NCBI GenBank assembly: GCA_946965045.2
Contig: OX337230.1
Location: 3,472,001-3,536,000, forward strand
Length of the DNA: 64,000 bases
Source of the DNA: Epithemia pelagica
Lineage: Eukaryota > Protista > Bacillariophyta
Direction of reading: 5' to 3'
Below the pieces are notes generated by a model, which saw only the letters and a program-made list of their open reading frames with translations, was not told the origin of the DNA and made no database searches. Of the stretch, positions 19,319 to 54,003 are shown piece after piece. How positions within the stretch are numbered: the stretch's first letter is position 1; every line of letters begins with the position of its first letter. The position numbers and the translations under genes were made by a program.

Positions 19319-20791
19319 ATGTCTCAACAACAAGGACCTCCTCCAGCACAAATGTCGCGCTCGAGATCCTTTCAGCATCCTGCGCCATCACAACGACCTC
19401 CTCAAGCACGAATGCCGTCCTCTTTTGAGGATGGTGGACCGGCAAGAAGTCCAATTAGGTTTCAAGACGAAGAAATGAGAATGAAGAATAGTGCCCAACC
19501 CGCCCTTGTTGTGCCACAAGCCGACGGCAACGACAACGACGACGCCCCCGTGCACGATGTGGTGAATGAATGGGCACAAGGTACCAGTATGCACGGTGTG
19601 CCCTTTATTTCGGATTTCGAAACGTGGCAGCATTGGAAACGAGCCATGTGGTTAATTTTGGTCACTGGTGCGGGTTGTATCATGGTCTGGCAAATTTATT
19701 CTCTCATTACGGAATACAAGGAATTTGAAATCATTACGGAAACGGAAACCAAGGTTCCGCAATCCCTCGAGTTTCCTCAAATTACTGTCTGCAGTACCAA
19801 CTATTTCAACCAAACGGCACAAGAAGAATTCGGAATTATCGATCCAATGAATGAAGAAGAATTGAAGCGCATTTCCATGGTAGATTTGATTTTCTTATCG
19901 AGTTTCAATGACGTGGACATGGAGGATGTGCGCCAAAATTGGACCGAAACTATTACGGACGATGGATTGTGCTACACCTTTCAGACAGACGAAAAGGTGT
20001 ATCGGCCGGGCAAGTTTGGTGGTTTGGTGTTTTGGGCCGATTTGTATCAAGAAGACTTTGAAAATTCAACAGAAACGGCCGGAATCTTTGTCTACGTGGA
20101 ACAAAAGGGGAGTCGGATTCACGACCAATTGCCCTTTTATTACATTTCGCCCGGTCGTGAAGCGGTCTTGTCGATTGATGTGACGGAATTCAATCGCGAA
20201 AAGAAAGCGCCGTGGGCCCGATGTACCTTGTCGGCACCCAATTACACGCAGCCCCTGTGTTATTCCGATTGCATCAATCAAAAGCTTCGAGATGATTGTC
20301 AATGCAAGCTCTATGGCGACTCGCAAGGCCCTGCGGACCTTCGGTATTGTCAATCGATTGAAAAAGAGGAAGATGCCGAGTGTACCTTTAATGTGTGGGA
20401 CAATGAAGAAGCCATTTTTGCCAATTGCAGTTCGTCCTGTGAATTACCCCCCTGTGCCGAAACTACCTACAGCGTGTCCTTGACCGATGTCGATTATGCC
20501 GAAAACTATTACAACTTTGTCGAAGAGGAATACGGTCTTCCTCGTCAAGTCTTTGCCACCAACTATGTAACGGTGCGCATCAACTTTGGAGCCATGAAAA
20601 AGCAAGAATTGTCCGAAAGCAAGGCAGTCACCTTTTCGCAACTCTTGGGTTCGATTGGTGGATCCATGGGTCTCTTTTTGGGTATTTCGGCCATTTCCGT
20701 CTTTGAAATTTTTGGAGACTTGTTGTGGTTGCGTCTCCTTCCCCGCTTTTGTGGATACCGTCGATTGCATGGAGTGGGATCCCGTTCCTAA
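19319..20791 (+). CDS. DEG/ENaC (ASIC-like) channel subunit, copy 1, intact, intronless
   Basis: W..GTSMHG pre-TM1 motif, TM1, FPQITVCSTN, Cys-rich thumb (C, CxxxC, CxC, C, C, CxxxCxxxxC) and TM2 QLLGSIGGSMGLFLGISAISVFEI. Confidence 0.9.
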   Translation: MSQQQGPPPAQMSRSRSFQHPAPSQRPPQARMPSSFEDGGPARSPIRFQDEEMRMKNSAQPALVVPQADGNDNDDAPVHDVVNEWAQGTSMHGVPFISDFETWQHWKRAMWLILVTGAGCIMVWQIYSLITEYKEFEIITETETKVPQSLEFPQITVCSTNYFNQTAQEEFGIIDPMNEEELKRISMVDLIFLSSFNDVDMEDVRQNWTETITDDGLCYTFQTDEKVYRPGKFGGLVFWADLYQEDFENSTETAGIFVYVEQKGSRIHDQLPFYYISPGREAVLSIDVTEFNREKKAPWARCTLSAPNYTQPLCYSDCINQKLRDDCQCKLYGDSQGPADLRYCQSIEKEEDAECTFNVWDNEEAIFANCSSSCELPPCAETTYSVSLTDVDYAENYYNFVEEEYGLPRQVFATNYVTVRINFGAMKKQELSESKAVTFSQLLGSIGGSMGLFLGISAISVFEIFGDLLWLRLLPRFCGYRRLHGVGSRS

Positions 20792-21415
20792 GTATATGTA
20801 TAGTAGGAGTACCCACAGAGAAGCGGTTGGAACTTCAAGCTAGTACGAAGTGAAGATTCCAAACCAGAACTGCTGAGGCAGCAGTGTTTGGTCCACAAAA
20901 TGTTGGTGCGTAATAGGAGTTAGTATTAATTTATCAGTAGAGAGAATGAATGAAGAACGACTCTTTTCTGTAGAGGATCAGGAAGTACGGATTATGAGCA
21001 ACTTTGAATCCTTCAAACTCGTCTTGCACTCGCTGGGTGACAAGAAACGCCTGACCGACATGATTGTTCGGATGGTTGGCATCGACAACGATTCCATCCA
21101 TAATCTTTTTCGAGTCGCTTGGTGTGACGATTGACGATTGACGATCCATGTTTTTCGTGGGAAAAGTTCACCCGACGCTACTGGAACATGGCGGATTTAA
21201 TTCTTCCTTTTTTCTCTACAAGATCCTGTACTACTATAGAATCCTGCGAGCACGCACATATTGTATGGCCTATGTCTATCAACGGTCGAAATCCAAATCT
21301 TGGCTCTATTGTATTGTACTAGTATGGCACTTTTTCTTCCAAAAAATGTGTCCGGTGCAAGTTTTGATCGTAAACAATATCTTGGGTCTCAAGAAAAGAA
21401 CAAGCCCTCTTCACC

Positions 21416-22807
21416 ATGACGATGGATGACCATCATTCGTCCAAACTGGATGAAGAAAATGCAAAGGGAGGAGTGGGCATGGACGATCATCCCGAACAAC
21501 ATGAAGATGAACAAGAAGAGTCACCGGTGTCCTCGTCTGTGCGATTTACGGATAACAGCAAGAAGGAAACCTACAACCAAGACAAGAAGAAGAAGAAGAC
21601 GAAAAGGATTCGAGTGATAATGCGGCAGTCCATTTGGTATTGGATGAATGGGCACAGGGATCCAGTATACACGGTGTACCGTTTATTTCCAATGGCACTC
21701 ATTGGAAGAATTGGAAACGATGCATGTGGTTCATTTTGGTCACGGGTGCCGGTTGTCTCATGGTGTGGCAAATTGCTTCCTTGGTGACGATTACAAAGTC
21801 ATTACGGAATCGGTTACCGTCGTGCCACGATCCTTGGCCTTTCCGCAAGTCACAGTCTGCAGTACCAATCCCAAAACAATGCCACCCGCATGGCCGAATT
21901 GGGCATTGTCAATCCCCAAAAATCAAGACGAGTTGCGGCAAATTTCCATGCAAAATCTCGTCCATGAAACCTGGTTCAATTACGAACCGTTGGAAGCTTC
22001 TCATAACTACTGGACGGAAACCATTACAGACGAGGGATTGTGTCATAGCTTTATCACGGACAAACGTGTGATACGGCCCGGTACCTTTGGCGGTTTGGAA
22101 CTTTTGGGTCAATTTGCAGCAAGACCATTTTGACACTGTCACCGAGATTGCTGGTATTTATGTCCATGTCGAACAAGTCGGCACGCAAATTCACGATCAA
22201 TTGCCCTTTTTATTACAGTTATCCTAGTACGGAATCCGTCTTGACCTTGACCGTCACAGAATTTCACCGCGAACAGGAAGCACCCTGGGCCAGCTGCGAT
22301 TCGCAAGCGCCCGAATGTACTCAATCTCGATGTATCAATGACTGTGTCAATACGGCAATTCGTGACATTTGTGGGTGCCGATAGTACGGCGATCTGTTGG
22401 AACCGGACATGGCCTATTGTGAATGGAATGATTGGAATTCGGCCAATTCCAATGGTACCAGGGACTTGTGTGGTACCGGGAAACGGAAATTGTCGACCAT
22501 TGTGCCAATCCTTGCGATTTGCCACCCCCTGTTCCAAAGTCACCAATCAAGCCATTTTGTCCGACATGGATCATTCGGTAGCCTTTTTTAGGAGCCCTGG
22601 GAATCGGAACGAGAACAGTGGGCCTCGGCCAATGAATTTCGCCACACATTTTGTCTCGGTCCATGTCAATTTTGCGCAACTCAAAGTGCCACTTTGGCCA
22701 TTTCGGCCATTTCCGTCTTTGAAATTTTAAGAGATTTGGTCGTGCGGCGACTTGTCCCCCGACTCTTTGGATACCGACATGTCCAAGGTGTCGGAGCGCG
22801 AGTATAA
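21416..22807 (+). pseudogene. DEG/ENaC copy 2, pseudogene
   Basis: EWAQGSSIHG, FPQVTVCSTN and thumb cysteines are spread over several frames. There is an in-frame TAG after CGCR, and the LLGSIGGSMGLF pre-TM2/TM2 segment is deleted near 22685-22700. Confidence 0.9.
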
Positions 22808-23052
22808 AAGAGTGATCCCCGAAACAAACAACTGCAGTTGGTTGTTGTCGAACCAACATGGTGGTTCTGAACCTCTCTTGTGTTTTGAAAGCAGAATTTG
22901 GACAGGACGACGCAAGTACCTACTACTACTAGTTGCAACCACACATTATGCCACATATATTTTGTCGTGAACCATTCGGTTTATCTGTTCTGCCTACTGT
23001 CTCCCGTTGGATAATTCTACCACCACTAGTATACAGACTTAAAGTGTTGTTG

Positions 23053-26000: not shown

Positions 26001-26110
26001 TTGAAATTGAGGGCCTGGGTGGTACCCACCATCATGATCATGAGGAAAAAGAGGACGGCAAGGACCGAACAACACGGTGGTACCATCACCACCGTCCTTC
26101 TCTGGCTCAT
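23053..26110 (-). CDS. Type-I membrane protein: signal peptide, GH17 beta-1,3-glucanase-like domain, Pro/Ser/Thr stalk, juxtamembrane domain, TM, cytoplasmic PDZ (2 exons)
   Basis: GH17 motifs IRIFSLTDC, FPFWE, VIGETGW, YYWFVAYD and EGHFGL. The intron 23598-23496 (GTACGT...CTCAC...TTCAG, 103 bp) joins IHT|ADFDFEK in frame to a PDZ domain (APPGKLGVVVD...GDRLLAVDE). Confidence 0.85.
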
Positions 26111-26294
26111 CTTGCTATCTATAGAATGTAGTAGATAGGGTGTCGTAATTTGTATGGGGACAATCCAGAACGACACTCTCTCTCTACAACAGATCCTCTG
26201 GAGCCTTGTTGTTGTAGCCTCGCTGGTTGCTGGACAAGCTTGTGTGAGGATGTTCTTGTTGTTGTCTTTGGTTCGTTTGTTCCTTCGGATGGAG

Positions 26295-26767
26295 CAGGGT
26301 GACCGGAGTCTAATTATACCCTCACTTTTAGACCCGGTCTAAAAGGGTATAATTATTTTAGACAGAGGTCGAGTCTAAAATAAAATTTTTAGACTCTTAA
26401 CCTTAACCCTTCAGTAGCGCCGCCACCACTGCGTGAGTACGAGACCGTTCTGCCTCATTCATCTCAATGACATCTCAATGAACAAAGTAAGGTCTCAGTT
26501 ATCCTCTCTCATGCTTAGAGAGTGCAAGAACAATGTCATACATACCATCCAATAACTTAGATGATGAAGCTATGAGGTCCTCTGGATGTGTTGTCATAGA
26601 CAATGCTCGCTCCTGGTAGCTGTCTGTCTAGGGTTAGGGTTATTGCTTCGCCATACAAAACCACGGCGAGATTTTAGACCCTGTTTTAGACATTTTATAC
26701 AGTCTAAAAGTACTTTTAGATTTATTTTAGACCCGAAATATTTTAGACTGTCTAAACGGTCACCCTG
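26295..26767. mobile_element. hAT-like MITE (473 bp)
   Basis: TIR CAGGGTGACCG/CGGTCACCCTG; GATGGAG duplicated at 26288-26294 and 26768-26774 (8 bp if the shared G is counted); many TTTTAGAC/GTCTAAAA subterminal motifs. Confidence 0.85.
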
Positions 26768-27645
26768 GATGGAGTGGTCGTTCCCGAGTGTTGGTGGAGT
26801 GCACAAAAATTGTGGCCAAAGACTGTTGTCGCTGGTCCGTTAAGGGGCTATAGTATCATATATCGTTCATGACCAAGCGTACCACGCCACACGATCTAAT
26901 AGAGTATAGTGTCGGAAAATGACAGTGGACGGGGCTATTGTTTTGAATAAGTGGGTCCAAATTCTACAAGACCAAACCATAAGCAAGTGCGGTGGGAGAA
27001 GTGCACGATTGACCCTTGTGCGGACAAGAAAGCACGACACATCGAGTTTGAAACCAATCCACGACCTCACAAACTGCACAATGGGAGTTGCTTTCGTTTC
27101 TCAATGGAATCTTGTTTTACCCCCCAGCGGGGTGAGTAATGAGGACTAGCGATAGAATACACGATTTGTATTCTCTATGTAAGGGAATACAAGCGTAGCG
27201 TATTCGATCACGCGGGACTCACTCACCCCTGCTTGGGGGTAAATCTTGTTTCCAAGACGGATGCGGAAGCAAAATCAAAGAATGCCGCGCTTTTTTTGTT
27301 GGACCGACCATTACATTCAACAAAACAGAGTCCACGGTTGGCAGCAAAACACTAACACTTGTGTTGGATGCAATCGGAACTATCCAGCATCCAGGGTGTG
27401 CGTTTGTGAGCAAGTGCGTAGCGTGTTCGAATCAACACCAAGTAGGTAGTCAAGGAACATACCTACTTTCTACAATATATACGCTTACAGTCGACAAACC
27501 TCTGTCCTCTTGGATGGAGCGCGCTTCCTTACATCGCACCTCCTTGTACCCACTATCATTGTCATCCACGGACATCAATAAGTCTTTTTGGGGTTCCATC
27601 CTGGAGTTTCAAACGTCCCGGTGGTCCCTTTGGGCGGTTTCAGTT

Positions 27646-29178
27646 TCAGGCACTGTCCCGTCGTTGTCCCACTCCATAAAGGGTACGGATTCCAAACAAG
27701 CGAGGAATGAGACGCAGGAGTAAGAAATCGCCAAAGATTTCAAAAATGGAAATGGCCGAAATGCCCAAAAACAAGCCCATGGATCCACCAATGGACCCCA
27801 ACAATTGTTCCCGCGTAATGGCCTTGCTTTCCGACAGCAATTCCAGGCCAATTTCCTTGAAATTAATGCGAATGGAAAAAAATTTTTGTCCAAAGTCGGT
27901 CGCATTGAACAGGTCTTCAAAGAATTCAAACAATTGGTTCGACAATTGCGCCGAGGTTACCGAGACACTGTATGTGATTTCCCGACAGGGTGGCAAGGAG
28001 CAATTGCAGGCTTGAAAAATTCGTTCCGAATCGGAATTGATGAATTCGGTACAGTTTTGATCGTCGAAATTGGTCAAGGGTTGACAATAGCGCAAATCGG
28101 GGTCGGCCAGGTCGTCGCCATAATTGCGACACTCGCACTCGTTTCGTATTTCGGCATTGACGCATTGGGAGTAACAGAGTCGTTGCGTGTATTCCGGGGC
28201 TTTGGAAAAGCAGCGCGCCCAGGGTGCTTCTTGTTCGCGATCAAAGACGGTCTTGTCCATCGACACAATGGATTCACCGCCGGGAGACAAGACGGTCAAG
28301 GGCAATTGATCGTGAATTTTGGTGCCTGGTTCTTCGACCCAAATCAAGAGGCCGGCCAACGGGGTATTCTCGTCAAAATCGTCTTGATCCAAAATGCCAT
28401 AGAGTCCCAACCCCCCGTAAATGCCGGGTCGATAGACGGATTCGTCGGTCAGAAAGGACCAGCATTTGCCAAAATCGGTAATGCGTTCCTTCCAGACTGG
28501 ATTAATGGTCGTGTTGGTCGTTTCGTCGAATTCATCCCACAATTCTTGCCCATTGAAATAGGTAAACCAAATCAAGTCTTGCACGGGCGGGGTAATGAGT
28601 CGCAATTCCGTTTCATTGGCCGGTTCGGAAATGCCCGTGGCTTCCATGCGCGTTTTGGAAAAGAGGTTAATGCTACAAAGGGTAATTTCCGGAAAGGGCA
28701 GGGACTGGGGCACGACGGTTTCCGTTTCGGTAATGACCTCAAAATCCTTGTATTGTTGAATGAGGGACGTGACTTGCCAGACCATGAGGGCACCGGACAG
28801 GCAGACGAGGCACAACCACAGAGCGCGTTTCCACAGCTTCCACGTTTCGCCATCGGCAATGCCGGCCACACCATGCATGGTGGAGCCTTGCGCCCATTCG
28901 TGCACGACCAGATTCAGAGGCACGTCTTCGGCGTCGTGTAGTTCGTCGTCCTCCAAAGGATTCTCCATGTCCTTCTTGGTGAGAGACTCATTGTCGTCGT
29001 TGTTGTCGTCACGGTGGTGGGGGCGGGTCGAATCCAACCAGTCGTTTGAACTTTCCTTGGCCGTGAGAACCGACGACGAGTGGGGCTGCAGGCTGGAAGG
29101 CTTTTCGTCGTCCGGATTGGTTGGGGGAGTGTTGGGTTGGTCGTCGTCCACACCGTCTTGCAGAGTTTGGGGTGTCAT
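27646..29178 (-). CDS. DEG/ENaC channel subunit, copy 3, intact, intronless
   Basis: EWAQGSTMHG, FPEITLCSIN, thumb cysteines and QLLGSIGGSMGLFLGISAISIFEI. Confidence 0.9.
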   Translation of the reverse strand: MTPQTLQDGVDDDQPNTPPTNPDDEKPSSLQPHSSSVLTAKESSNDWLDSTRPHHRDDNNDDNESLTKKDMENPLEDDELHDAEDVPLNLVVHEWAQGSTMHGVAGIADGETWKLWKRALWLCLVCLSGALMVWQVTSLIQQYKDFEVITETETVVPQSLPFPEITLCSINLFSKTRMEATGISEPANETELRLITPPVQDLIWFTYFNGQELWDEFDETTNTTINPVWKERITDFGKCWSFLTDESVYRPGIYGGLGLYGILDQDDFDENTPLAGLLIWVEEPGTKIHDQLPLTVLSPGGESIVSMDKTVFDREQEAPWARCFSKAPEYTQRLCYSQCVNAEIRNECECRNYGDDLADPDLRYCQPLTNFDDQNCTEFINSDSERIFQACNCSLPPCREITYSVSVTSAQLSNQLFEFFEDLFNATDFGQKFFSIRINFKEIGLELLSESKAITREQLLGSIGGSMGLFLGISAISIFEIFGDFLLLRLIPRLFGIRTLYGVGQRRDSA

Positions 29179-29712
29179 TCTGGTAGCAGTGCCTTGAGGA
29201 GTTGAATGATACGGACGGTGTGGTGGTGCCTGATGCTTCTTTTTCTTCTTCCGATGCCCCTTTTTGGGATCTTTGGTTGCTCACTAGCAACGACGAAGAT
29301 GACGACGACAGTGGCACTGTGGCAAACCTAAAGTACGAACACCAAGAGTCCTTTGTTCACCCTTCATGCATTTTGCTCGCTAGAAGGATACAACAGGGAT
29401 ACTCGGTATTTTCTGTGGACGAGCTACAAACATAGACAAACCTCCACAAACTGTAGGTCGCATAGACATTTTGTTCTTATACTGTACATGTTATTACAGT
29501 TATAAAACGTTAATTTATAATACCCTCTTTGCGGCCTTGCGCATTGTAGATAAATGTTGACATTTGTTGAGCGTGCCGGAGACCTAAGTAGACAAATGGA
29601 CACTTCTAAGTAGGAATATTAGGCCCCAGTTTTTGGCGACATCTCAGTCCCGAGTGGAACAAAGAGCCAGTCACAGTTTACAAGAACAGAGACGGAATGA
29701 AATTTCGCATCG

Positions 29713-29965
29713 ACAAATCCACAAATCCACAAATCCACAAATCCACAAATCCACAAATCCACAAATCCACAAATCCACAAATCCACAAATCCACAAATCC
29801 ACAAATCCACAAATCCACAAATCCACAAATCCACAAATCCACAAATCCACAAATCCACAAATCCACAAATCCACAAATCCACAAATCCACAAATCCACAA
29901 ATCCACAAATCCACAAATCCACAAATCCACAAATCCACAAATCCACAAATCCACAAATCCACAAA
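29713..29965 (+). repeat. (ACAAATCC)n array, about 31 units, left TIR
   Basis: Directly visible perfect 8-bp period. Confidence 0.95.
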
Positions 29966-31646: not shown

Positions 31647-32801
31647 CGATGCGAAATTTCATTCCGTCTCTGTTCTTGTAAACTGTGACTGGCTCTTTGT
31701 TCCACTCGGGACTGAGATGTCGCCAAAAACTGGGGCCTAATATTCCTACTTAGAAGTGTCCATTTGTCTACTTAGGTCTCCGGCACGCTCAACAAATGTC
31801 AACATTTATCTACAATGCGCAAGGCCGCAAAGAGGGTATTATAAATTAACGTTTTATAACTGTAATAAGATGTACAGTATAAGAACAAAATGTCTATGCG
31901 ACCTACAGTTTGTGGAGGTTTGTCTATGTTTGCAGCTCGTCCACAGAAAATACCGAGTATCCCAGAATCTCCGAATTTTTGGGCTGCGCGGACGACATGA
32001 ATGAGGTGTTGGAATGACGACGATGATGATGTGTTAAGTGTTGGGTGAATGACAGACGAGGCAATATTCGCCGCGAGAATGGCCCCTTGGGGAGGGTACA
32101 CGCGACCCGAGGTCGCTTATAGGAATTCTTTTTATTCGCGTATAGATCGCGGAACGTTCACAAAGTATCTTTCGCGAAACAAGCGCACAATGGCGTTGGG
32201 AGATTTGCAATCTCTCTCTGATCGATTTGGTCGAATCCACACCACCGTACATACCATGGCGACCAGTGACACACGAATCCTGATCGTTTGGGCAAAGAAT
32301 CCATCTCGCTGTTTTTGTTTTCAAGAATCTTTGGGTGCAGTGCGTGGTTGAATTTCACGTTCCATTCCTTGGCGTGTTGTCCCCATAACCCCCTTTTTGA
32401 AAAGAACTACCCATTGTAGTATTGCGCTCCAACGGTGAGTCGAGAAATGCTTCGCTCTACTACAGAGGAATCGGCCTGTATCTTGGTTGTCGTCCTGTCC
32501 GGTCCAAGGTACTGCCTCTACTATAGTAGAGGTAGTAGTAGTGCTCGGCTGTGATGCCTTGGATTGGTGCACTGTGACAATCGAACAGTGGAAACACCCG
32601 ACCACCACTCCACCATGGCCCTGCTCTTTCTGGTTCTATTCTACTCCCCTAAGTGTCCCAATTGCCTTGTTGCCACGGCTGCTCTCTCATGGTCATTATT
32701 GTCTTTTTTGTCGTGTGACAGAAAACTCTCTACTGCTACGACTGCCAGTGGCCGACGACACGTCTGTTGGAGAGATATTGGTGGTGGTGGATCATTCCAA
32801 A

Positions 32802-35800
32802 ATGGACTTCTTCATTTGTTGTCGGTCCCGGATCCTGGTTCCGATCATGTGGTTGTTCGTGAGGAAACCAAGAGAATGGTTTGCGGTTTCTCTGTGTTTG
32901 TTGGTGCTGACTCCGATCGTTCTCCTTCCTGCCACGGTTGGAGCCATTCGTAGTGATGCACCAACAACCACAACCACGACCACAACCACCACCTGTGGGG
33001 ACGACGATTCCTCATTCGACAAACAACGACAATGCATCCAAGCCGTACTGGATTGGATTCGGACCCATCCCCGAGGATTTGTCAGTCCCAAATTGGAGCT
33101 GCAACCACAATCCAGCAGCGTCGGGCCTGCTACCAACGACAAGGACAAGAAGAACGACAAGTCGTGGGTCTGGACCGTCACGGAACCAGTCGAACCGGAG
33201 GAAGTGCTCTTGTCCATTCCGTGGGACCAGTGTCTCGTGGTCATGCAACCACCACCACAATCACAAGAACAACCCTCGTCAGCGAACGGAACTACCGTTT
33301 CTGTTTGTGCTCTGATCCAGGCACTCCACAATCCACAGGGAGGAGGAGAAGGTGGAGGAGAGTCCGATTCCGCAGACACTGACAAAAGCCTTGCGGACCA
33401 GGACAAGGAGCCATTTTGGAGGAGGACACCACTGGTGGATTACATTTCGTCTCAAGTATTGTTGGGTGTACAATCACCACAAAACAACAACGATGCAGCT
33501 CTTTCTACACGGCCACCTCGATTGTGGTCATCCGCAGGAAGACAAGCCTTGCACACTCTCTTGGGCGAGGATCTCAAGAACGATCACCCAAACAAGGACT
33601 CGTCATTTTTTGTGTCTCTGGCTCATCCTTGGACTGTACGAGATTCCCATGGGATGGACAAGGATGAAGATACTAATCGCCAAGAAGGAATGGTGGACTC
33701 ACACAGCGATTGTCTGGGACATGACCCACAATGGGTCTGGGCTCTGCACCAATGGATTGCATTGTATGGACGGCCTCTCCTCCAAACCGAACAACCACCA
33801 GGCGCAGTCTTGATTCCACTCTACGATTTGTTGACTTGGTGGTACCAAGAAGAGACTCCCAAAGCATCCTCGTCAAAGTTTCCCAATCTCAAGATTGTAA
33901 CGCCATTGGATAACCATCAGAACGACCCGAACGAAATGGACCGCAATCCATTCCAGGATGGAGAAAGTGTCACGATTCAAGCGTCGCGGTTCATTGCAGC
34001 TGGACAACCACTCGCTGTTGCCACCCCAAAGGCCTCAACGTGGCATCCGTCTCATTCCAATGTTGCCCTCTTGCCCGAAATGGGCACCATGTTTCAAACG
34101 TATGGGATTGTCCACACCGAATTTCCTCAATACTGGATCCTTCCCGTCGGAACTCCAAACGATACTGACACCCTTGTCTTGACCGTGGATTGTGCAACGG
34201 ATACCGAGTGGCAAGTGCACGATGCGCATCGGGAATTGCAACTTTTGTGGTATCCGGGCGGAACTCCATTGGTCAATCCAGACAGTTTGCTCTACGACGA
34301 GCGCAAGAAGACTAAATGGTTGGAGTTTGTCCAGCATCACATTCATCGCTTGTATTTGCACATTGCAAACGAGGAGAAGGATCAGGCACTCATTCCTCAA
34401 GCCGAGTGGGATGCCATAGTCGCTTATCGCGAGGCGCTATTGATGGTATTGGAAGCATTGGAAGATGTGTTGGATGGAGCAGGGTACCGAGAGTATGGTA
34501 GTACGAGTGCGGAGGACAAAGAACCCTTGCTTTTCTTTGCCACGACACGCCAAGGTCGATACAATCTACTAGATGTACCGTACAATGATTACCGTCGAGA
34601 GACATGTGATGAACAAGCCCCAATCGATTCCATTCAGAAACATTCCAAAATCATGGACCGTCTCACTACACCGTACCAAACGATTGTTTACGACCAAGAT
34701 CCGGAAGAAGGCAATATTTGCTATGGCTTGGATGGCATCTACCAACAATGCACATCATACCGTCCGCAGTACCACGAAATGATGGTCCATTACCCAGCAC
34801 GCTTTCTCCCTTTTGTGAAACGGGTCTTGTGGGTGGGCGGAGGCGACGCCATGCTGCTCCATGAGATACTCAAGTATACCAAATCTCTGGAACTCGCGGT
34901 TGGCTTGGAGCTGGATCAACAAGTGACGCGCAAGGCCTTTCAACACTATGGCGTCCAACCCCATTTCGACGATCATCGTGTCCAATGGTGGTACGGCGAT
35001 GCCGCCAAATCCTTGTCCATGATGCCAAGTGAATATTTCGGTACCTTTGACCTTGTACTGGTTGATTTGAGTGAGACTGTCTTGAGTTTTCCTGTATCGG
35101 ATGGGCTCGACATTTGGACAGCGCTGTCCTTGCTTTTGCAACCCAACGGCATTTTCGTAAAGGTACGTAAGAGTGGGCTCCAATAGATAGATGGCACCAA
35201 GGCTGATCACTCACACTCTGTGTCATCTCAATTGCTTCTCCATAAAGAATGGCTTCTATTTCCAAAAGTTGAACAAGATCTTTCCCCATTCAGCACAAAT
35301 AATCAATTACGATATTCCTCTCATATACAGACAGAGTTTTGCTCTGGGGAGCTTTGAAACGGATTTCTTGCATACACATATGGCACACCACCATGGGGTT
35401 AAGACACTGTTTGCGCCATTAGAGAACGTCGACAGCGACTTGACAATGATGCACGACTATCACTGGAACAGCACCGCAAAGCCGTACAATGACAAGACAA
35501 GTGAAATGTCAGAAAGCACAAGTGGGAAGCCACGTCTGCAAGACAAAAGTCCCGGACTTCTTCTCGTGGTTGAAGCCGAGCAGATTTTGGACACTTCCAT
35601 CATCGCGTCTGCGGAAGCACTTCAAAACACGATTGTCCGGGCTATTGAAATGAGCGGCTTGTTAACCATTATTTCGTCCATGACGCTTACGGATGGAGAC
35701 CAAGTGGTGATTATTGTTCTAGCGGAGGGCTACATTGTAGCCAGAGGATGGCCGGCAAATGAATATTGCGCCTTGGACATTCATTTATGGAGCGCGTTTG

Positions 35801-37245
35801 ATCGAATGGAAGCTGTCAAAGACGAACTCCTAGTTGCATTGCAAAGCCCATACTTTTCACTGTACCGCATGGTAGCGGGTGGTATGTTTGGTGTCCAAAC
35901 ATGGCAACGAGATGCCTCCCTTCGTGGTCCTCAGTTTCGTAATAGCTCTGACGATTCCCCCGCTTCTCACAATGATTCCGAGAACAAAATGCGCTCAGCA
36001 TTTTCGAATGGCAATGCTCAGATGTATCAACATCTCCTTCATATCTACTATGAAGAAGTGCTCAGAACTTGGTTGCCCGTTGATAAACAGAAGAACCGTA
36101 ATATAGCATTGGCTATCTGTGGATCCAGCGAAGAGCGTTGTCATAGCCCAGAAGTGTTCAGGACCATCTTCCACAACAACGCCTTCGACGGGACAATCAT
36201 CCCTATTTGGACGTGTCCCAACTTGTTGAATGGCGGTAACGATACAAGCGTCTCCAAATTCCTGTGCGAGCGAGAAGTCAATGCCACTCTTCATGATCTA
36301 GTTGGTACAAGTGGACAAAGCTCAGAAAGTCAAGGCATATCACTCATCGCTCTTGACGCCACTGCTCCTTTTGCAATGGCACAAATTGTTCATAAGGTAC
36401 TTCGGAGTTCCAGACAACGATCCGTTCTTCTATCGGACAGAAACCTTCTTGTACTGTCATCAAGTAACAACGGTGCCGACGACTCAACTTCAACTTGGCG
36501 ACGAATGTTCGTTGATCAATTCCGCTCAATTCTTCCCCATCAACCAGCATTCGTATCCCATGTTACATTCTCCAATGATACCAACATATTCGATACCTTA
36601 AGTTTCGTTTCCGGTGACTCTTCGTTTACGATGCATTCGAAGAAAGCTACAAAGAACTTTGAGCTTCGCGCTAACATGGTGTCGAACACGCATCACATTG
36701 GTGGAGTTGAACTCAAATATCAGCGTGACTTCACACCTTCGCAGTTTTTCACCAGTCGAGATTACGACCAACGCGGTCCCTTCCATCAATGGAAGATGCA
36801 AAGACCTGTTGGTTTTCAAATTCTCGTACGAATCGAAGTGGACGAGTTCTTCAAGTCAGAGTCAGATTTGAAGTCTTTGCTTGATCTCGCGATCAAGTCG
36901 GCAGATGATGAGGTCGAGTACACATTGGAACTTCATGACTTTACTAACCTTGGAGAAGGTAGTGTGATTGTTGGGGTATTTTCTGGTGGCAAAAGCGGAG
37001 GACTTCCCATCGTCTGTCTATGGGATGGTCGAAACCATATTGATGTGAACATCTTTCGGTATCACGAAAACAGGGACTTTGCTGATAAATTCACTGAAAG
37101 CTTGACAAGTAGTTTCCAGGGATCCTTACATGTCGTGTTACGTGACGAAATGCCTCGCGGACATGGACGAGTGGTCAATTTCAAATCGGATCTTGATGAT
37201 AAACGAAATGGCAAAACTCCTTACTGGGCCTCCCATCTATCATGA
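32802..37245 (+). CDS. Multidomain polyamine-pathway fusion: signal peptide, SET-like, aminopropyltransferase (spermidine/spermine synthase-like), two AdoMetDC-like domains (2 exons)
   Basis: APT motifs YHEMMVHYPA, VLWVGGGDAMLL, ELDQQV, GDAAK and FDLVLVDLSE. The intron 35163-35247 (GTACGT...AAAG, 85 bp) joins FVK|NGFYF. SpeD-like segment IVLAEGYIVARGWP..EYCALDIHLW. The start could also be the ATG at 32847. Confidence 0.8.
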
Positions 37246-44667: not shown

Positions 44668-44921
44668 GCCCATTCACAGTGGACACGGACATGAACCGGT
44701 CACTCGAATCTTACCTCTACTCTAGGCCCTGGGGTTATCACAACATGTACCTCTAGGTAGGTTTCACGGATTGTCATCCTACCTAGTAGTCGAGAAGCAC
44801 ACCTCACTGGGCCCGCTCTTTCTCTTTGCCCATATCATCAGGAAACACCATGCAAATGACCCGACAAGTCCGCCCGGATGTGTATCCTTGTGTCAGTCGA
44901 AAACACATTATAATAATAGTA

Positions 44922-45403
44922 AGTCTCTCAACAAACGAATTCATATCGGACTGTAGGCAAGACAGGTCCTCGGATCGTGAAATGGCCCTGTACTTGCATG
45001 AGTTGGTCGATTGGTGGATTCTCTCCCAACACACAAGGAATCGTACCATTCGGTGGCCCACTGCGCGGGGAGAGAGACAGATTCCGGTAGTTGGTACATT
45101 GGACCAGACACTCCCAACGAAATTCTCACCATCGCTCTCCACGATCAATCGTGCTTGGCTGCGTTCATTCGTCCCAACCACGTCGATCGAACCTACAGTC
45201 TCTCAACAAACGAACTACAATCGGATTGTAAGCAAGACAGGTCCTCGAATCGTGAAACAGCTCAGTACTTGCACGAGTGGGTCAATTGGTGGATTCTCTC
45301 CCAACACACAACAAGGAATCGTACCATTCGGTGGCCCAATATGCACGAAGAGATCAAAAGATTCTGGTAGCTGGCACATTGGACCGGACACTCCCAAAGA
45401 ATT
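44922..45403 (+). repeat. Diverged ~205-bp direct repeat x2 (period 275 bp); possibly a decayed LRR gene
   Basis: 44922-45124 versus 45197-45403; translations contain QLVDSLPT and TLP.E(I/L)..(I/L)-like fragments. Confidence 0.7.
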
Positions 45404-46695
45404 GGTACGTCTCGGGCCGGAAGGGAAGGACTGTCTGTTTCGTTCGTGTGCCGCTGACTCTTGGATTGGGGGACTCTTGTTCGAAGAATGCCGTGAAACA
45501 ATCACACCTCAGAGTTGTGTGGTGTGGGGACAGCAGTTAGGGTCCGAATTCGACTTCCAAGAGAGTGTTGCTTGTCGCCACCACGGAGAGGATCCAATGG
45601 AATGACTGTTTCGTTCGTTTGCCATTCTTGACTATTGGATTGTTTTTTCCTTGGAAAACTTTTCCACTAAAAAAACCTGCCTCCAGACACCACAACCACA
45701 TCTCATTTGCAGAGTTCCAGGACTGTGAATCCCATTGTCACCATTGTAGGAATGAACAAATTTTTCTTGGGCAAACACAGATACAGATGTGGTCCAGAGT
45801 CACTATTTTGATTGCCAGTCCTCATTCCAATTCGACGAGCCTGTGGACATTGCAACTAGTGGGGGCATGCCGTAGTCCGTAGTAGCAGTAGTAGTCATGC
45901 CGTGTATCCGAGACGGTACTCCCTAGGATGCCCCATCATCACCTTTCGTACAGTTCCTGTTGTTTGGTGAATGTTCCTCTTGTTGTGTGCCTATTAGTTC
46001 TTGTTGTCCAGATTCCGTTCCTGGGCTGGCTCGGTCTGGTGTCCTGCAATCCTGGTAGGAAATCATACTAAAGGGGTTCTCTTCTCTTATTCTCGATTCT
46101 TGCGCTCGAGCAGTGACCCAAACGACAGGGGATTCTTTCAGTCGATCGTCTGTAGAGATCCCTGCTGTCTGTTGCTGTCGGTTTCGGGAAAGGGGTTTGC
46201 CGAGATGTAACTGGGTTTGCCGAGATAACTTTCCAGATTTTTGAATTAATTGTGAGGACACCATTCCAGTTCGAGACTCAATCATTCGTCGGCATCCGAG
46301 ATGTTTGTGTAGTGCCCTCAGTCGTGGCTGCCGTTGAAGCGTGAACGAAACCATTCTTACTTCAAAGGAGATTGGGTAGGGACGGTAGAATTGCCCCTAT
46401 AAGTGATCCAGTCACTCTTGGTGTCCCACAGGGTGGGCCTGGTTTGTCCACCGACAAAAACCGACAAGATAAAAACAAACCCAGTTCTTGCTTCTTGCTC
46501 CTCACAATGGTTTCAGTTTGTCGACGCAACACAATCCGAACCACTTCTCATATCATTATCACCACTTTGTTGTGGCACACAAACACAGATATACACACTC
46601 AAAAGACACCACAAGCAAGACACCACAGGTAAGCAAAAGCAAAAGCAAAACCAACACAGCAAATACTCCTCTCTCTTTCGAATACAACAGTCAGC

Positions 46696-47694
46696 ATGGT
46701 ACGAGTGGAGACATCCTCTCTGTTTCGTCGGCTCTTTGTGCCGGATGATTCCAAGCAGCAGTCTTCTTCCCAAACTACCAAGTGGCGTGATTCTTCTCCG
46801 CATGGAACAACAACAACAACAACGATTACTTCGTGGGACGATTCCCTGAGTTCCTTTATCGAAGTCTATCTTCCTTTCAAAGAAAACGAACCAGAAGAAC
46901 CAATCCTCCCCGACAATGAATCACCCCGAGACTGCACTAGCAACAATGGCAACCATAATATAGTCGAATGTGGCGTTTCCAGAAACAAGAGGGTGCGATT
47001 TGTCCCCGACTCTCAAAACTGTTGGTACGACGACGACTCGAGTCTTTATGATAGTGACAAGAATGATGATGATGATGATGATACAAGCATGACTTGTGGT
47101 TGTTGTTGATACACGGACGAGGAATACAAGCAAATGAAGGCTGCCATTCCCCACATGCGGAAACAAATTGCATGGCTGGAACAAGAGGAAGAAAAGCATT
47201 ATCACTACATGTTCTCAAAACAAGAACCAGCATATGGCACCAAGAGAGGCGACATGATGCTACAACAAACAGAAGGGTACATGTCCTTTGCCGATACCTT
47301 GTCCTGGTTGTTTCAGGAAACCAGTCAGGTGTCCCATGTCTTGTGGAATGCCCAACACTTGCTGCACTCCCATTTTTCCACGGACAGTACTAGTAGTAGT
47401 AGTAGTGTTTCGCATCGCCTGTCTCGCTTGTACATGGGATGCAAACTCGACTGGATTGGCTTGGAATATCATTGCGGTAGTCCAACAGTGCGACACGAAA
47501 CCAAGGCCCGTCGCGAGGCCTTGTGGGAAGTCGTTTCCGACATTCAATCGGAATACGAACAAGGCTTGTGGACGGTCGAAGGACGCAATGAGGAATTGGC
47601 CGACTCGTGTCGTCAACTTTCGCAACCCCATGCTTTGTACGCGCAATTGATTGCTCACGCGCAACGTCAAGCTTCGGCCGTGTTTGACGAGTAA
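46696..47694 (+). CDS. Diatom-type hypothetical protein with one in-frame TGA (47107-47109)
   Basis: ORFs 46696..47109 and 47134..47694 share a frame: KRVRF...CC*YTDEEYKQMK...GLEYH...RREAL...DIQ. Trp is expected at the stop. Confidence 0.6.
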
Positions 47695-48244
47695 AACCGA
47701 ATCATCATGACGACAACACAGGAGACTGACTGGCAGAAACTGGCAAACAGCAGGGCGTGACTGTGATCGTGGGACCCTAGCGAGAACCAGAGGACGAGGG
47801 ATCGAATTCGAATGACAACGACCACCACCCCAAGACAGTTTGGCCTTGCGGGAAGCGCCCAAGTGCATCAAGCCCGGTCCGTGGACTACAAAGTTTGTTG
47901 GCTACGGATGGCGATGCGAAGAGGACTTTCTTTGTTCCTCAAACTATCACCAGTCCAGACCACGCTAAATAACGGCACCACACTGGGTCTGAGCACCTCT
48001 GATGGTGCTCTCGTTTGGAACGCGAAGCCTTGGCACGATGCATCATGTGGGATTTGAGGAGCGTGTCCGTTCCATTCCATTGAAGAGTATGTGTGATGGA
48101 TGTCGATCGGTCGAATGTGATGTACCATGTGGGAACGACCCAAAAGGCAGTACAAATTTTCTGATTCTTTGGAAACGAATGAATGAAAACGGACGAAACA
48201 CGTGTGTGTGATTCGTTGGAGTAAGATCTGTTTCATGGTGTATC

Positions 48245-49468
48245 ATGGGAGTCTTTCTCGCAATCACCGCCCGCAAGATGACACAAAATACCGTGGCATC
48301 GCTGGGAAAAGGATTTTTTACCTGTTCCAAATCCACAATGGATATCCACGAACAAGCGTTCTTGTCTGGATTGGTTTTTACCCATGACCAAGACAAAATA
48401 GAACCGCAATGGAGGCCACAGACTAGGCCTCCCAGTGAGAGAGGGTGCCGTTCCTACCATGCGTCGGTTGTTGTGAAGTATCCAGACACGACCCGCGACG
48501 AGAATGTGGTGATAACGGGAGGTTATACAAGAGGCTTTATGAGTGAAACAAAGTGGACCATTGTCTTCAACGTTGGTAGTGGAGAGTGGCAACACGGACC
48601 TTGTATGCAAGAATATCGATATCGTCACGCATCTGTGGTATGCAATGGTGCTATTTACGCCATTGGCGGGCGCGGGGACTTCATTTCTAATGATAGCATT
48701 GAACGTATCAATATCAGGGATTTGCTTGGTCCCTCATCTTCCAGCAACGAAACGGATGGATGGACGATGTTGACGTGTCGTTTGACTACCGGACGGGAAG
48801 GGTGTGCCGCTGCTGTTGTACGTGACAGATTTATTGTTGTGGCGGGGGGATGGAATGGAAGCGATACTGTATCATCAGTGGATATCATCGACACACTATC
48901 CGGAAATCCATGTTCGGTCATAGCTGGACCATTGTTGAAAGTAGCTCGAAGCATGTTTGGAATGGGTGTGGTTGGTGAATGCTTATATGTTGTTGGTGGG
49001 AAAGTTGGCACGGAATTTGATACGGAAGATCGTGTGACGAAGTCAGTCGAATACCTGGAGTTTGATGGCTTGTTGGACAATACAGCGAGTAGTGCAACAA
49101 CTGTTTTCCCTTTTTCCAAATCGTGGACGGTTCATAGCGATCTCAGTCTGAACACTCCTCGTAAGCTACATGCTGTAGTCCAAGTGGGCTCCTGTCTTGT
49201 TGTTGCAGGAGGATTGACGAACGGCAATGACCCCTTACGTTCTGTGGAAGTTTTAGATACTTTGAAAAGTATTGTTTGGAAGCTTCCTCAGTTGAGACAT
49301 GGGCGGTCTGAAAAGGGGAGAGATGGTTGTAGCATGGTTTACTTGTCGAGGGGTGCCACTCTGATTGATCCGTGTGATCCGTTAGATTTGTGGCAAACAC
49401 TTTCTCTTGGGGACAAGAACAGTTGGCTGTTTGCTCGTTTGTTGGCGTCTGTCAAAGTTCCCATCTGA
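48245..49468 (+). CDS. Kelch-repeat protein
   Basis: Repeated R..HASV...GG...S.E...W Kelch units (IYAIGG, IVVAGG, LYVVGG, LVVAGG). Confidence 0.9.
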   Translation: MGVFLAITARKMTQNTVASLGKGFFTCSKSTMDIHEQAFLSGLVFTHDQDKIEPQWRPQTRPPSERGCRSYHASVVVKYPDTTRDENVVITGGYTRGFMSETKWTIVFNVGSGEWQHGPCMQEYRYRHASVVCNGAIYAIGGRGDFISNDSIERINIRDLLGPSSSSNETDGWTMLTCRLTTGREGCAAAVVRDRFIVVAGGWNGSDTVSSVDIIDTLSGNPCSVIAGPLLKVARSMFGMGVVGECLYVVGGKVGTEFDTEDRVTKSVEYLEFDGLLDNTASSATTVFPFSKSWTVHSDLSLNTPRKLHAVVQVGSCLVVAGGLTNGNDPLRSVEVLDTLKSIVWKLPQLRHGRSEKGRDGCSMVYLSRGATLIDPCDPLDLWQTLSLGDKNSWLFARLLASVKVPI

Positions 49469-50209
49469 CAAGACTTAACGACTCGAATCAAAACTCCCCA
49501 TAGTCTGTCAAAGGATTGGGATCCCAGCAAACTTTACGAACAGTTCAGACTTATAACAACTATCTCATACTGTTGTTTCTTGGGTCGTTTCGTATGTGGT
49601 GGAGGAAGCTGTTGTGGATGTCAATGATTCTTGCTACTCGGCACATCCCCCAAACGTCCACCCTGGGTGGGTGCGGGGTGAGAGAGGAGTAAGATGATTT
49701 TCATCTGTATAGTGTGCCAGTAGACTCCTTTCTCGTATGAAGTTGCTTTCGAGATAAGCATTAATTGTCACTTGTGTGTTCTATAGTGCTCTATTGGAAG
49801 CGGTGATTCGGTTGTCGTAGAAAGGGGTCGTCGTCGTAGGAAAACGAGTCGTCCTCTCTGGTTTCGATTTTCATCGATTGTCTTGCTGTGGCACCTCCTA
49901 TCCAGCACCGCTCGACGGAGTAGCACCAAGAAGACAATGTTTGAGTTTCATGAATTTGTGTGTCTCCCGTGAAAACCGTGTCCCAAAGTGTCTGTCTCCA
50001 GTCCAATATCGAGCGCCGATCGTTCTCTCGTCGTTGTTGTTGTTGTTGTTGGATCATTCATGGTCTCGTGTGAAAGAGACCAAACGGTGCGCTATCCTCT
50101 TGTTGGGTCATGCTGTGCCATATCCCAGTGTCGTGTTCGTGTGTGTCCCCCGGTTGTTGTTACCGGCCCAATAGGCCGCGCACCTTGCGATGGCCCGCGG
50201 CCCTCCAAG

Positions 50210-51955
50210 TTACCGAGGGACAAGGGTACACAGTAGGAAATCGCCCGCCACTTGCCACAATCCCAGTGCCGACGCTCCCAAAAAGAATTCCAACGATCCT
50301 CCAATGGCCGCCAAGAGTTGCGCCGTTGTCATGGCGGGAGATTCCGTCCACAATTCATATTCCAAGGCGGCGAAATTGACCGTCACTTCCATAAAATTTT
50401 GCGCATAATACTCCTTGGCTTGAGTCACTTGTCCGTTCGTAATGTTGGGATTTTGTTCCATGCTGCGAAACACGGTATCAGCATAGACCACATCCGAGAC
50501 TTGCGCATGATATTGTGTTTCGAAACAGGGTGGTCCTTGACAGGCAGCATGACATATGGCATGCTGGGACGGCAAACTGCCAGTGTCATGTCGTCTTGAC
50601 AGTACCTCCTGGACACAGGCTTGATTAACTGCACCACACAGCGGCAAGGAGGATGGATTGTTGGGTGGTTTGGTACTCATCCACGGATCTGTGCTGAATG
50701 CATCGACAAGGTCCTGGTCCTTCATGGTATCGCTCTGGTTGTTGTTGTTGCTGCTGTCGATATCTCCCCAAGCTCGACAGTGACACTCGCTTCGAATCGT
50801 CTGATACCGGCATTACCATTGACACGCACCTTGTGTCAATGTCGACGATGAATCATTCTTGTCATTCTCAATACGACAATGTCGCCAGGGATCTGTCGTT
50901 TCCCGAATCCACGTGGTTTGTGTCAAGCCCACCACGGCACCTTTTCCGGGAGCAACCGTGACAAAGGGGAGACCGTCATAAATAGGCATGCCGCCATGAG
51001 ATGATGGTTGTTGTTGTTGTTGTTGCACATAGACGCGAATGCCCGCCGCCCGGATTCCGTCGTGCACAACATGGGCATCGGATTGATTCAAATGGACATA
51101 AAATTCCAAACCTCCAAAAAATCCCGTCCGCAAGACGCGTTCCGAGGTGGTAAACATCCAACAAATGCCATGCGGTGTCATGCGAGGACGCCAGGCTTGA
51201 TAGAATTGCGTTTCATTCAAGGTTTTGTCATTAAAGGTGGTGAAAAAGAAAAAGTCGGTCAACCGAGGTGACACTTGAACAAGTTCCCATTCCGATGTGG
51301 CTTCCCACGTGTCTCGAGTCATGTTATTAACGTCGTTGTCGTTGCTCGAATTGGCCGATAGCCGTTCCAAATATTCAGTGCGTCGCCATTTGGATTGCGT
51401 GTGCCAATTGCAGACTGTGACTTGCGGAAATTCGAGGGAGGATGGTGGAACAACGGTTTCCCGATCCTTGACAATGGCATAGGTTCGGTATTCCCGAATA
51501 AGAGCCATCATTTGCCAAGTCATGACACCAGCCGAGGCCAACACCAAGAACAATCATAGGGCTCGTTTCCATCGTTTCCACTGTTGTGCATTGACAATTT
51601 CTGGAATGCCATGCAAGGTCGTTTCGTGTTGTCACCATTCCTGCCATACCTCACGGAGCGAAACTTCTTCTTCTTGTTGTTGTTCGTCTTCGTTTGGGTC
51701 ATTCACAAACATTGTCGTTGTTGTAGAAGAACGATTCATAGCGTGGATCCCTGGGTCCTTGTCCTGGTGGGGGTGGTCCTCATTATTTGTTCTCGTCGTC
51801 ATCATCAAGGGTGATGCCTCTTCTTCCACATCCCAATCGTCATCCTTGTGGGAAGGACGTTGCTGGTGCTTGTCGTTCTTGGTGCTGGATCCGTCGGAAT
51901 CCACTTGCGATTGTTGCATGGCGTCCCTTTGTGCCATCGCCATCGCCATCACCAT
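50210..51955 (-). pseudogene. DEG/ENaC copy 4, pseudogene
   Basis: One frame with three in-frame stops (EW*QHETTLHG, RAL*LFLV, CQW*CRYQ); FPQVTVCN; thumb cysteines; TM2 QLLAAIGGSLEFFLGAS; further stop or frameshift after TM2. Confidence 0.88.
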
Positions 51956-52342
51956 AATAATAATATGCTTTCTGGTTGTTTGCGTGGAGTGGTTTGAAGA
52001 TTCTCTCCTCTCTAATTATTCTTAGGAAACCAATCTCGTATCCTTCGAATCGTTGGGTGCTGGTACAACGGTCCCTCGCACAAGGTCTATGCACAGAGAC
52101 AAACAACAGAACAGTGCATCGACATACTCGTACATTCCTCTCTTCTCCCTCGTTGTTGCTTCTGTGTTGTCGAGATGCGGATTGAGGCGATCGAATCTAC
52201 ACAAAGGTTACGGTTTACAATAGCGGTTATAAACGGTAGTTAACGTCAATATAACGTTGGTTTCTCCAAAAGAACCCGGTTTTACGCTGGAATGGTGTGA
52301 CGCATCGCCTCCCAAGAACGCAGCAACACAGGGACGACGACC

Positions 52343-54003
52343 ATGGCGGCGTCGGAACCGGATGCGGCATCCACCACCAACCATCTGGACGACAACAACG
52401 ACGACAACACTTTATCCTCTCTCAAACAAGATGAACAACCACCACCAAACTCCAAGGATTCACCACTGCATCCAAAAGATGAGGAACAAGGCGATACACG
52501 AGTGAAAGAGTCCCAACGAATCCAACAAACAGCACAAGAGGGATTATCCAACAAGCAGAATGATCCCTTACCGGACAATAACGATGAGAACAAGAGTGAC
52601 CAGGAATCGTCCTATCGTGCCACGACGGATGACGACGAACCGCACCACGACGAGGATTACGATGATGATGAACACGCTCCGTTATTTCGAGTGGTTCAAG
52701 AATGGGGTGAATCTTCCACGGTCCATGGGATGAATGTCATTTGCGATTCGCATCATGTGTGGACCATCTGGAAACGTCTGCTTTGGTTCTTCTTGGTGAT
52801 TGCATCGGCCAGTGTCATGGTCTGGCAAATGACGGCCTTGATTCGCGAATATCGGGAGTATGCCGTCGTGACGGAAACCCAAACCATTCTCGATGATACC
52901 TTAGAATTTCCCGAAATTACCATTTGCAACATTAATGAATATTCACAAGCGGCGAGTCGCATCGTGGCACAAGAACAACAACAGGATGACGACTGGATCT
53001 TGCCTCGGACGACTCCTCAACTCGAACGCATGGCACAACCCTTGGAGGAATTTGTCCAAACCACCTCGTTTCAACAACAAGTGATTGACAAACAAGACTT
53101 TGCGCAAGTGTGGAAACGAAGGATTACCGATTTTGGGTCCTGTTGGGCCTTTGCGCCACCCCCCTCGGAACCACGGTCCGGTTCGTCGTCGTCTTTGTCG
53201 ACAACGCCTCGCACCAGCACCAGTGGATTGGAATTTTCCGTCTATTTGAATCAATCCGATTATACCAGTCGGACGGAATTTGCCGGCATTCTCCTTGTAG
53301 CCCAGCTACCGGGCACGTTGGTGCACGAATTTTTACCCTTTGTCGTGGTTCCGCCCGGCACGGTGGCATGGATTGCCCTCGAGGCCACGCAAATGGTACG
53401 AGAACGCGAACCCCCCTGGTCTCAGTGTCATTCACAGGCGCCCGAGTATACCCAGGCCCAGTGCCGCGCCCAATGTTTCATGCCTCCTTTCGGCGCGACT
53501 GTCACTGTCGCTATTGGGGCGACCCCGTGACCAATGACAAGGATGACGCCGAGCTGCCCTATTGTACGACCAATCAAGATCAATTGTGTATGGAAGGCAT
53601 TTGGGATCGAGAACAAGATCTCGTCCAACAATCGTGTGCCTGCGAATTACCGCCCTGTCAAGATACGCAATATCACATGTCCGTTTCGGATTTGGTCTTG
53701 GCGGCCACCACCAAAGCACCACACGCGTTGCCAAATGCCACCACCACCACAAGTACCGACGATGGGGCCCGCAATCTCGTGTCGGTGCGGATTCCATGGG
53801 GATCCACCCCAGTGACCCGTTTGGTGGAACAAAAGGCGGTCACCTTTGCCGAATTGCTCGGTTCCATTGGAGGTTCCATGGGTTTGTTTTTGGGCATTTC
53901 GGCCTTGAGCATGTTTGAAATTTTTGGCGACTTGTGTCTGTTGCGACTGTTGCCCCGTTTGTGTGGATATCGTCATGTCCGGGGATGGGGTGCGGCCGCG
54001 TAA
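52343..54003 (+). pseudogene. DEG/ENaC copy 5, with a single 1-nt frameshift near 53478 (recent lesion or assembly error)
   Basis: EWGESSTVHG, FPEITICNIN and ELLGSIGGSMGLFLGISALS. Adding one A (TTC[A]ATGCC) gives CFNASFRRDCHC, matching copies 1 and 3. Confidence 0.8.

Follow-up and report, generated by a model that had tools for sequence, protein, structure and literature searches.

DEG/ENaC proteins are textbook 'animal' channels, so their genes in an alga raise the question of what they encode, whether they belong to the alga and whether they are still in use. We have analyzed a group of such genes in a window of 64,000 nucleotides from the diatom Epithemia pelagica (contig OX337230.1 of GenBank assembly GCA_946965045.2, forward strand positions 3,472,001 to 3,536,000; the positions below are numbered from the first nucleotide of the window). 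A first-pass annotation, made from the sequence alone, had noted five copies of a channel gene resembling the acid-sensing ion channels (ASICs), and had inferred a local expansion, consistent with horizontal or retro-origin. We think it likely that the locus is an old cluster, now partly decaying, of nuclear genes native to the diatom that encode ASIC-like channel subunits of the DEG/ENaC family.

The long open reading frames (ORFs) of the region 18-56 kb were scanned against Pfam, and the proteins found were then used as tblastn queries against the window. This located homologues of the DEG/ENaC family (Pfam PF00858, ASC) at five loci on both strands, extending from the start of the first at 19319 to the stop codon of the last at 54003, in agreement with the copy number, orientations and coordinates annotated previously. 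Their order on the map is c1, c3, c2, c4 and c5, and tblastn at E<1e-3 revealed no sixth copy in the window. Two of the five are intact in the haplotype that the window represents. c1 (19319..20791, plus strand) is a single ORF of 490 amino acids (aa) and c2 (27646..29178, minus strand) encodes 510 aa; these match the ASC profile with E values of 1.9e-58 and 3.3e-55 (199 and 188 bits, against a cut-off of 23.6) and with coverage up to position 453 of the 455 in the profile, i.e. as significant, full-length members. Two ORF pieces of c5 score 114 and 79 bits against the same profile. The loci are therefore real, but five channels is not what this haplotype encodes: c3 is a pseudogene, c4 carries three stop codons and c5 a frameshift. 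Taking both haplotypes of the organism together, four of the five genes are intact in at least one, and c3 is broken in both.

A profile of 21 members of the diatom family was compared with the sequences of the PDB. Vertebrate ASIC2 (E 9e-50) and ASIC1 (1.5e-48) gave the best matches, both by profile and by structure (PDB 2QTS, 6AVE and 6L6P), and have the same topology as the diatom proteins. The alpha, beta and gamma subunits of ENaC, BASIC (ASIC5), FaNaC and pickpocket (PPK) have the same Pfam family and fold, but the matches are weaker, ranging from 8e-45 for ENaC-alpha through 3e-43 for ASIC5 to 1e-26 for PPK26. A model of the c1 monomer calculated with AlphaFold2 had a mean predicted local distance difference test score (pLDDT) of 74; this was ~90 in the extracellular domain, where most blocks of 10 residues exceeded 85. 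In the model, a beta-rich domain with helices in the thumb (312-327 and 350-368) and knuckle lies between two further helices, at 105-134 and 439-477, so that c1 has the ASIC1 architecture of two transmembrane helices (TM1 and TM2) with palm, beta-ball, thumb and knuckle. Along the chain, a disordered N-terminal tail (1-75) is followed by an HG motif (92-93), TM1 (~105-134), the extracellular domain (~135-438) and TM2 (~439-477), which includes G455-I456-S457 at the position of the selectivity filter. On searching the PDB with this model using Foldseek, the top matches were human and chicken ASIC1 (E 2e-27, TM score 0.59-0.67 by target, ~420-440 aligned columns), and all 50 of the 50 matches listed were DEG/ENaC chains. 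Structure prediction thus returns the ENaC/ASIC fold.

The diatom proteins are ~20% identical to ASIC1 and ASIC2. Common to them are the HG motif, the FPxxTxCN sequence, the tyrosine at the top of TM1, the tryptophan of the PW sequence at the wrist, and ten thumb cysteines plus one further pair; the diatom TM2 closely resembles its ASIC2 counterpart. H92-G93, F152-P153, C158 and P298-W299 (c1 numbering) are invariant in the 21 diatom sequences, and so across the family are G447, G448, M450, G451, G455, I456, S457, S460 and E463 in TM2. HG before TM1 and FPxxTxC(N) after it are found in all of c1-c5. The filter conforms to G/S-x-S, being G-I-S throughout the clade compared with G-A-S in ASICs, and GAS in c4. 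The motifs reported from the first reading (HG, FPxxTxC, a cysteine-rich thumb and GxS) are thus present in c1, c2, c4 and c5, the exception being c3 where the glycine of the filter is lost. The tyrosine that tops TM1 and the Pro-Trp at the thumb base align with the residues of ASICs (Tyr72/Trp288) that couple the extracellular domain to the pore.

There are also differences from the animal proteins. Fourteen columns of extracellular cysteine are conserved in five metazoan ASIC-like proteins; 12 of these are cysteine in all seven aligned diatom sequences, but the remaining pair, in the region of the finger, is absent from every one. The segment between the first and second conserved cysteines is 60 residues in c1 compared with 88 in fish ASIC1b, so that the diatom finger is reduced by ~28 residues and lacks its metazoan cysteine pair. 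In ASICs, which are gated by protons through the acidic pocket and residues of the palm, the finger segment contributes to this pocket. The large finger or GRIP-type insertions of ENaC are absent from the diatom proteins. In an unrooted tree the diatom clade was not placed inside the bilaterian ASICs. Because the finger is shortened and the clade does not lie inside the bilaterian ASICs, we class the genes as ASIC-like members of the DEG/ENaC family and not as ASICs.

We note that the cytosolic tail carries a sequence RLxPRxxGxxxLxGxG that is invariant in the diatom clade, absent from animal channels and missing in c4. c1, c2 and c5 have it among their last 20 residues (e.g. window 20732-20788); trafficking, or the binding of a regulatory partner, are possibilities for its role. 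Among the proteins from the exhaustive profile search described below, P0082 (2330 aa), P0081 and P0090 (~1100 aa) match the diatom DEG/ENaC profile in as many as 11 separate segments. These may be concatenated or repeated channel domains, or fusions of gene models.

To which organism do the genes belong? In a word-index search the high-scoring relatives were all from diatoms, including three Epithemia clementina genes on one contig and several Entomoneis paludosa transcripts (MMETSP1065) marked as complete. The next were cnidarian ASIC-like proteins at E 1e-10, and repeating the word-index search with alignment of distant hits gained only a few insect and nematode proteins. The Entomoneis sequences, as complete MMETSP transcripts, show that at least one diatom expresses the family. 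An exhaustive profile search gave 12,862 proteins at E<=1e-3, and trees were calculated from representatives (50% identity) of 380-760 aa covering the diatom and metazoan groups. A total of 51 representatives and the window copies form a single clade (53 rows counting c1 and c2) with a FastTree support of 100 and a stem length of 0.92. In IQ-TREE with a mixture model the clade has a value of 99 in the approximate likelihood ratio test (SH-aLRT; 55 rows including the window copies and their alleles). The phylogeny thus separates the diatom clade from all animal sequences by a long and well-supported stem.

About 50 of the clade representatives are full-length, mostly from Logan, ENA or JGI, and those that can be named come from Seminavis, Epithemia and Entomoneis. 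Seminavis robusta CAB9519788.1 (already annotated as 'Acid-sensing ion channel'), Epithemia clementina ACA910_006165, ACA910_006170 and ACA910_006171, and the Entomoneis paludosa MMETSP1065 members are 34-56% identical to c1 and have the same motifs as the window copies. The best matches outside the clade are ASIC-like proteins of Saccoglossus, Physella, Haliotis, Antedon, Asterias and Helobdella, together with fish ASIC1b. The earlier remark that homologues outside the metazoa are only scattered is right insofar as the family is mainly metazoan, but understates the position, given ~50 full-length diatom representatives at 50% identity. The named members all come from benthic, gliding forms, and a restriction of the clade to raphid pennates is suggested by the sequences collected. 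Searches of the ESM Atlas, whether by features or by shape, yielded animal PF00858 clusters only and were of no taxonomic help.

The locus is present in two forms. Among database proteins the closest is P0001 (98% identical), encoded on the ENA contig ERZ21939226:ctg1286l. A second contig of that assembly, ctg1314l, is 100% identical to window 46343-59530 (13.2 kb), and we conclude from this that ctg1286l is the alternative haplotig of the same organism. The alleles of c1 and c2 (the latter P0005) on this haplotig are both 98% identical to those of the window. Walking along the haplotig to c4 and c5 revealed intact ORFs of 581 and 554 aa, respectively, both with PF00858 hits, and the intact c5 allele keeps all of the family motifs.

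Comparison of the two haplotypes reveals the nature of the lesions. c4 (50210..51949, minus strand) extends from ATG to TAA over 1740 nt in one frame, and its three internal stops are nonsense substitutions relative to the other haplotype, i.e. GGA>TGA at 51634, TGG>TGA at 51556 and CAA>TAA at 50815. All of the c4 indels between the haplotypes are multiples of three. Introns and readthrough were considered for these stops and ruled out, since homology crosses them and the other allele has sense codons there. c5 (52343..54003, plus strand) is divided between ORFs at 52343-53530 (E 1.3e-32) and 53110-54003 (E 4.6e-22), and its product would be truncated at 395 aa. Frame 2 gives way to frame 1 between 53476 and 53479, where a codon has lost one base, as the spacing of the flanking conserved cysteine and arginine shows; the window allele is one base short after 53478, where the other allele has G. 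The remaining c5 indels are in frame. c4 and c5 are arranged head-to-head with their start codons ~390 bp apart. In both of its alleles c4 has a divergent TM2 (GGSLEFFLGAS...LWQ) with the C-terminal motif missing or truncated, and its sequence is that of a divergent paralogue with altered pore residues. c3 (21619..22801, plus strand), in tandem with c1, is recovered as tblastn segments in three frames that can be read only piecewise. This reading requires at least six frame changes and contains in-frame stops, and TM2 has lost its first half together with the glycine of the filter. The alternative haplotig also has c3 in broken form; over this region the two haplotypes share 93.6% identity, with 13 gaps, compared with ~98% for c1 and c2.

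The alleles were checked in read-derived contigs from four public runs (X1-X4) on three samples of one study. The segment 51296-51619 of c4 occurs in two forms, that of the window and one with 26 differences that is an exact match to the haplotig allele. Their depths are 81 versus 89, 70 versus 72, and 26 versus 23 in runs X1, X3 and X4; run X2 departs from this ~1:1 relationship (85 versus 208). The c5 form with the additional G was found in run X4 together with nine substitutions, and is identical to the haplotig allele. Because both alleles are found in read-derived contigs the sequenced diatom is heterozygous at c4 and c5, and these allele forms are real rather than errors of assembly.

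This bears directly on whether the channels are diatom genes at all, or were brought into the contig by animal contamination or a chimeric assembly. It is true that DEG/ENaC proteins are overwhelmingly metazoan and that, beyond the clade, the closest relatives are ASIC-like proteins of animals. But the copies fall into one clade with Seminavis, Epithemia and Entomoneis on a long stem from all animals, and the assembly holds two diverged haplotypes of the whole locus that occur in the reads of three samples, at ~1:1 where measured at c4. The 13.2 kb identity with ctg1314l points the same way, coming from the same ENA assembly as the haplotig and so not from an independent one. The base composition equals that of the neighbors, the G+C content of the channel genes being 0.47-0.54 overall and 0.50-0.62 at third codon positions (GC3), compared with 0.46-0.57 and 0.45-0.63. 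A contaminant or chimeric contig is contradicted by these observations, and we give it a negligible probability. The channel genes are native to the diatom, as the annotation had supposed of the DNA, and the evidence supports them as true members of the DEG/ENaC family that have the ASIC fold and are encoded in the diatom nuclear genome. The same assembly has another DEG/ENaC paralogue at a different site, with PPR and pyruvate-formate-lyase (PFL) genes as neighbors.

A native gene may still have been acquired, and the annotation had taken the absence of introns to be consistent with horizontal or retro-origin. The coding regions of c1, c2 and c5 are indeed uninterrupted. However, the neighboring genes (GH17-like, spermine-synthase-like, AdoMet-decarboxylase-like, Kelch and AAA_16) are likewise long single ORFs, and the family genes of Seminavis and Epithemia clementina are single-exon, so that intronlessness carries no signal on origin. 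With G+C and GC3 also within the range of the neighbors, these features lend no support to a recent horizontal or retro-origin.

Nor is the expansion recent. c1 and c2 are 51% identical, while c4 and c5 are 30-34% identical to c1. In the tree c3 is sister to c1 (SH-aLRT 95), and c1/c3, c2 and the three Epithemia clementina genes group together with a support of 99; c4 and c5 join this group weakly (support 82), and the Entomoneis members are spread over several subclades. Since the Epithemia clementina genes nest within the c1/c2 group, the split between c1 and c2 is at least as old as that from Epithemia clementina, and taken with the distribution of Entomoneis this indicates that the diversification predates the split of these diatom lineages. 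Recent transfer or retrocopying from an animal followed by a burst of local duplication would accommodate the intronless genes and the patchy phyletic distribution, and lateral transfer between animals and heterokonts was left open in published work (PMC10507113). But paralogues with 30-51% identity that diversified before these lineages parted, among neighbors equally intronless and with native GC3, make such an event very unlikely. Transfer at an ancient stage, before the radiation of the diatoms, is a different matter. Ancient origin and ancient transfer are both compatible with the tree, which is unrooted and has no outgroup. Rooting as an arbiter was rejected, since between two groups, diatom and metazoan, any diatom clade that is monophyletic must by construction occupy one end of a branch. 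No microsynteny was found within +/-10 kb with the Epithemia clementina or Seminavis loci examined.

Are the genes still under selection? Synonymous and non-synonymous differences between the two haplotypes were counted codon-wise by the method of Nei and Gojobori, giving the ratio of the non-synonymous and synonymous proportions (pN/pS). c1 has 16 synonymous and 11 non-synonymous differences (pN/pS 0.185), c2 has 18 and 9 (0.143) and c5 has 52 and 32 (0.17, with pS 0.142). c1, c2 and c5 are clearly under purifying selection. With 50 synonymous and 64 non-synonymous differences (pN/pS 0.35) the constraint on c4 is more relaxed, as expected for a decaying allele or a less constrained subunit. 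These values are relevant to the suggestion that all five loci are relics without function, left over from a family in the course of being lost by the species. A dead c3, and c4 and c5 with inactivating mutations in the window haplotype, would be in keeping with this. But pN/pS is 0.14-0.19 for c1, c2 and c5 at a pS of 0.05-0.14, all of the family-invariant residues are retained in these three, and intact alleles of c4 and c5 exist, so we consider wholesale loss improbable.

The identity between the haplotypes is uneven along the locus. The segments 18618-21187 and 26767-29383, containing c1 and c2, are ~98% identical with a pS of ~0.05, and 48048-56107, containing c4 and c5, is 92.3% identical with 134 gaps and a pS of ~0.14. 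Note that the more diverged block is that with the two null alleles in the window haplotype.

How might the proteins function? In an old, partly decaying cluster of native subunit genes, each subunit has a cytosolic N-terminus with the HG motif, two TM helices and a disulfide-rich extracellular domain of ~300 residues. Three subunits would plausibly assemble into a cation channel in the plasma membrane, by homology probably preferring Na+, with the pore lined by TM2 and its G-I-S filter. An extracellular stimulus would be relayed to the pore through the conserved wrist of TM1 tyrosine and thumb Pro-Trp, and protons, a ligand or mechanical force are candidate stimuli for a putative sensory role. 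c1, c2 and c5 encode constrained subunits and c4 a divergent one, and c3 is dead; the window haplotype is null at c4 and c5, and the other haplotype is intact at both.

Several points weigh against this interpretation. The finger is ~28 residues shorter and one disulfide pair is absent, so gating may differ from that of ASICs, and the middle residue of the filter is isoleucine rather than alanine. Null alleles at two of the five loci and one dead locus indicate that the cluster is partly dispensable. No RNA run is among the public runs listed for the organism. Lastly, the channel function of the diatom members is deduced by homology.

A bolder version would hold that the clade is an old, independent non-animal branch of DEG/ENaC proteins that act as working sensory Na+ channels in raphid pennates, responding to pH, a ligand or pheromone, or touch, and feeding into membrane excitability. 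Diatom membranes are known to be excitable. We entertain this tentatively, as something possible that falls short of being probable. If true, it would provide a unicellular photosynthetic system, and possibly an outgroup, for the question of ancestral gating.

Two papers (Elkhatib et al. 2023, PMC10507113; Aguilar-Camacho et al. 2023, PMC9822975) have reported Deg/ENaC homologues from non-animal groups, namely Heterokonta and Filasterea. The non-animal species used were Cafeteria roenbergensis as the sole stramenopile, Symbiodinium sp. KB8 and Tunicaraptor unikontum (PMC10507113; also PMC9822975). Cafeteria grouped with channels of cnidarians at the base of the ENaC-type Clade B (PMC10507113), and the choice between gene loss and lateral transfer was left open (PMC10507113, PMC9822975). 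Unlike the ENaC-type placement of Cafeteria, the diatom clade scores best against ASIC-type proteins. A search of open-access full text found no description of diatom DEG/ENaC or ASIC proteins, the matches being coincidences in reference lists; one 2026 preprint in that search lists PF00858 among marine algal protein domains without describing diatom members. The diatom branch is thus new to the open-access literature searched, although the sequences are already in databases with one annotated as an ASIC, and its novelty is limited by the non-animal members already published. It provides a second large DEG/ENaC lineage for asking whether the ancestral stimulus was protons, a ligand or force, and adds a candidate type of sensory channel to diatom physiology. 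The heterozygous null alleles of c4 and c5 are natural loss-of-function material.

Some other features of the window may be noted. A gene with a spermine synthase domain (32655-35186, 843 aa) is followed after 4 nt by an ORF with an AdoMet decarboxylase domain (35191-37245, 684 aa). The spermine-synthase-domain protein is 90% identical between the haplotypes, and its own allele was the only relative found by word search. The haplotypes also differ by large insertions. The segment 7984-18617 (10.6 kb, G+C 0.41-0.44) contains five long ORFs with no Pfam hits and is absent from the alternative haplotig, where the empty site is at L001 9190-9235. Its ends are CACTGCAA(G/A)TC inverted repeats with a TA target duplication, which fits an element of Tc1/mariner/pogo type better than a CACTA element, for which a 3-bp duplication would be expected. 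Conversely, the alternative haplotig has an extra ~14-15 kb (L008 1-11473 and L010 1-5821) between window 43063 and 44103, with ORFs of 566, 1139, 814, 387 and 358 aa and a transposase of MULE/ZSWIM type. This is probably a haplotype-specific transposon insertion.

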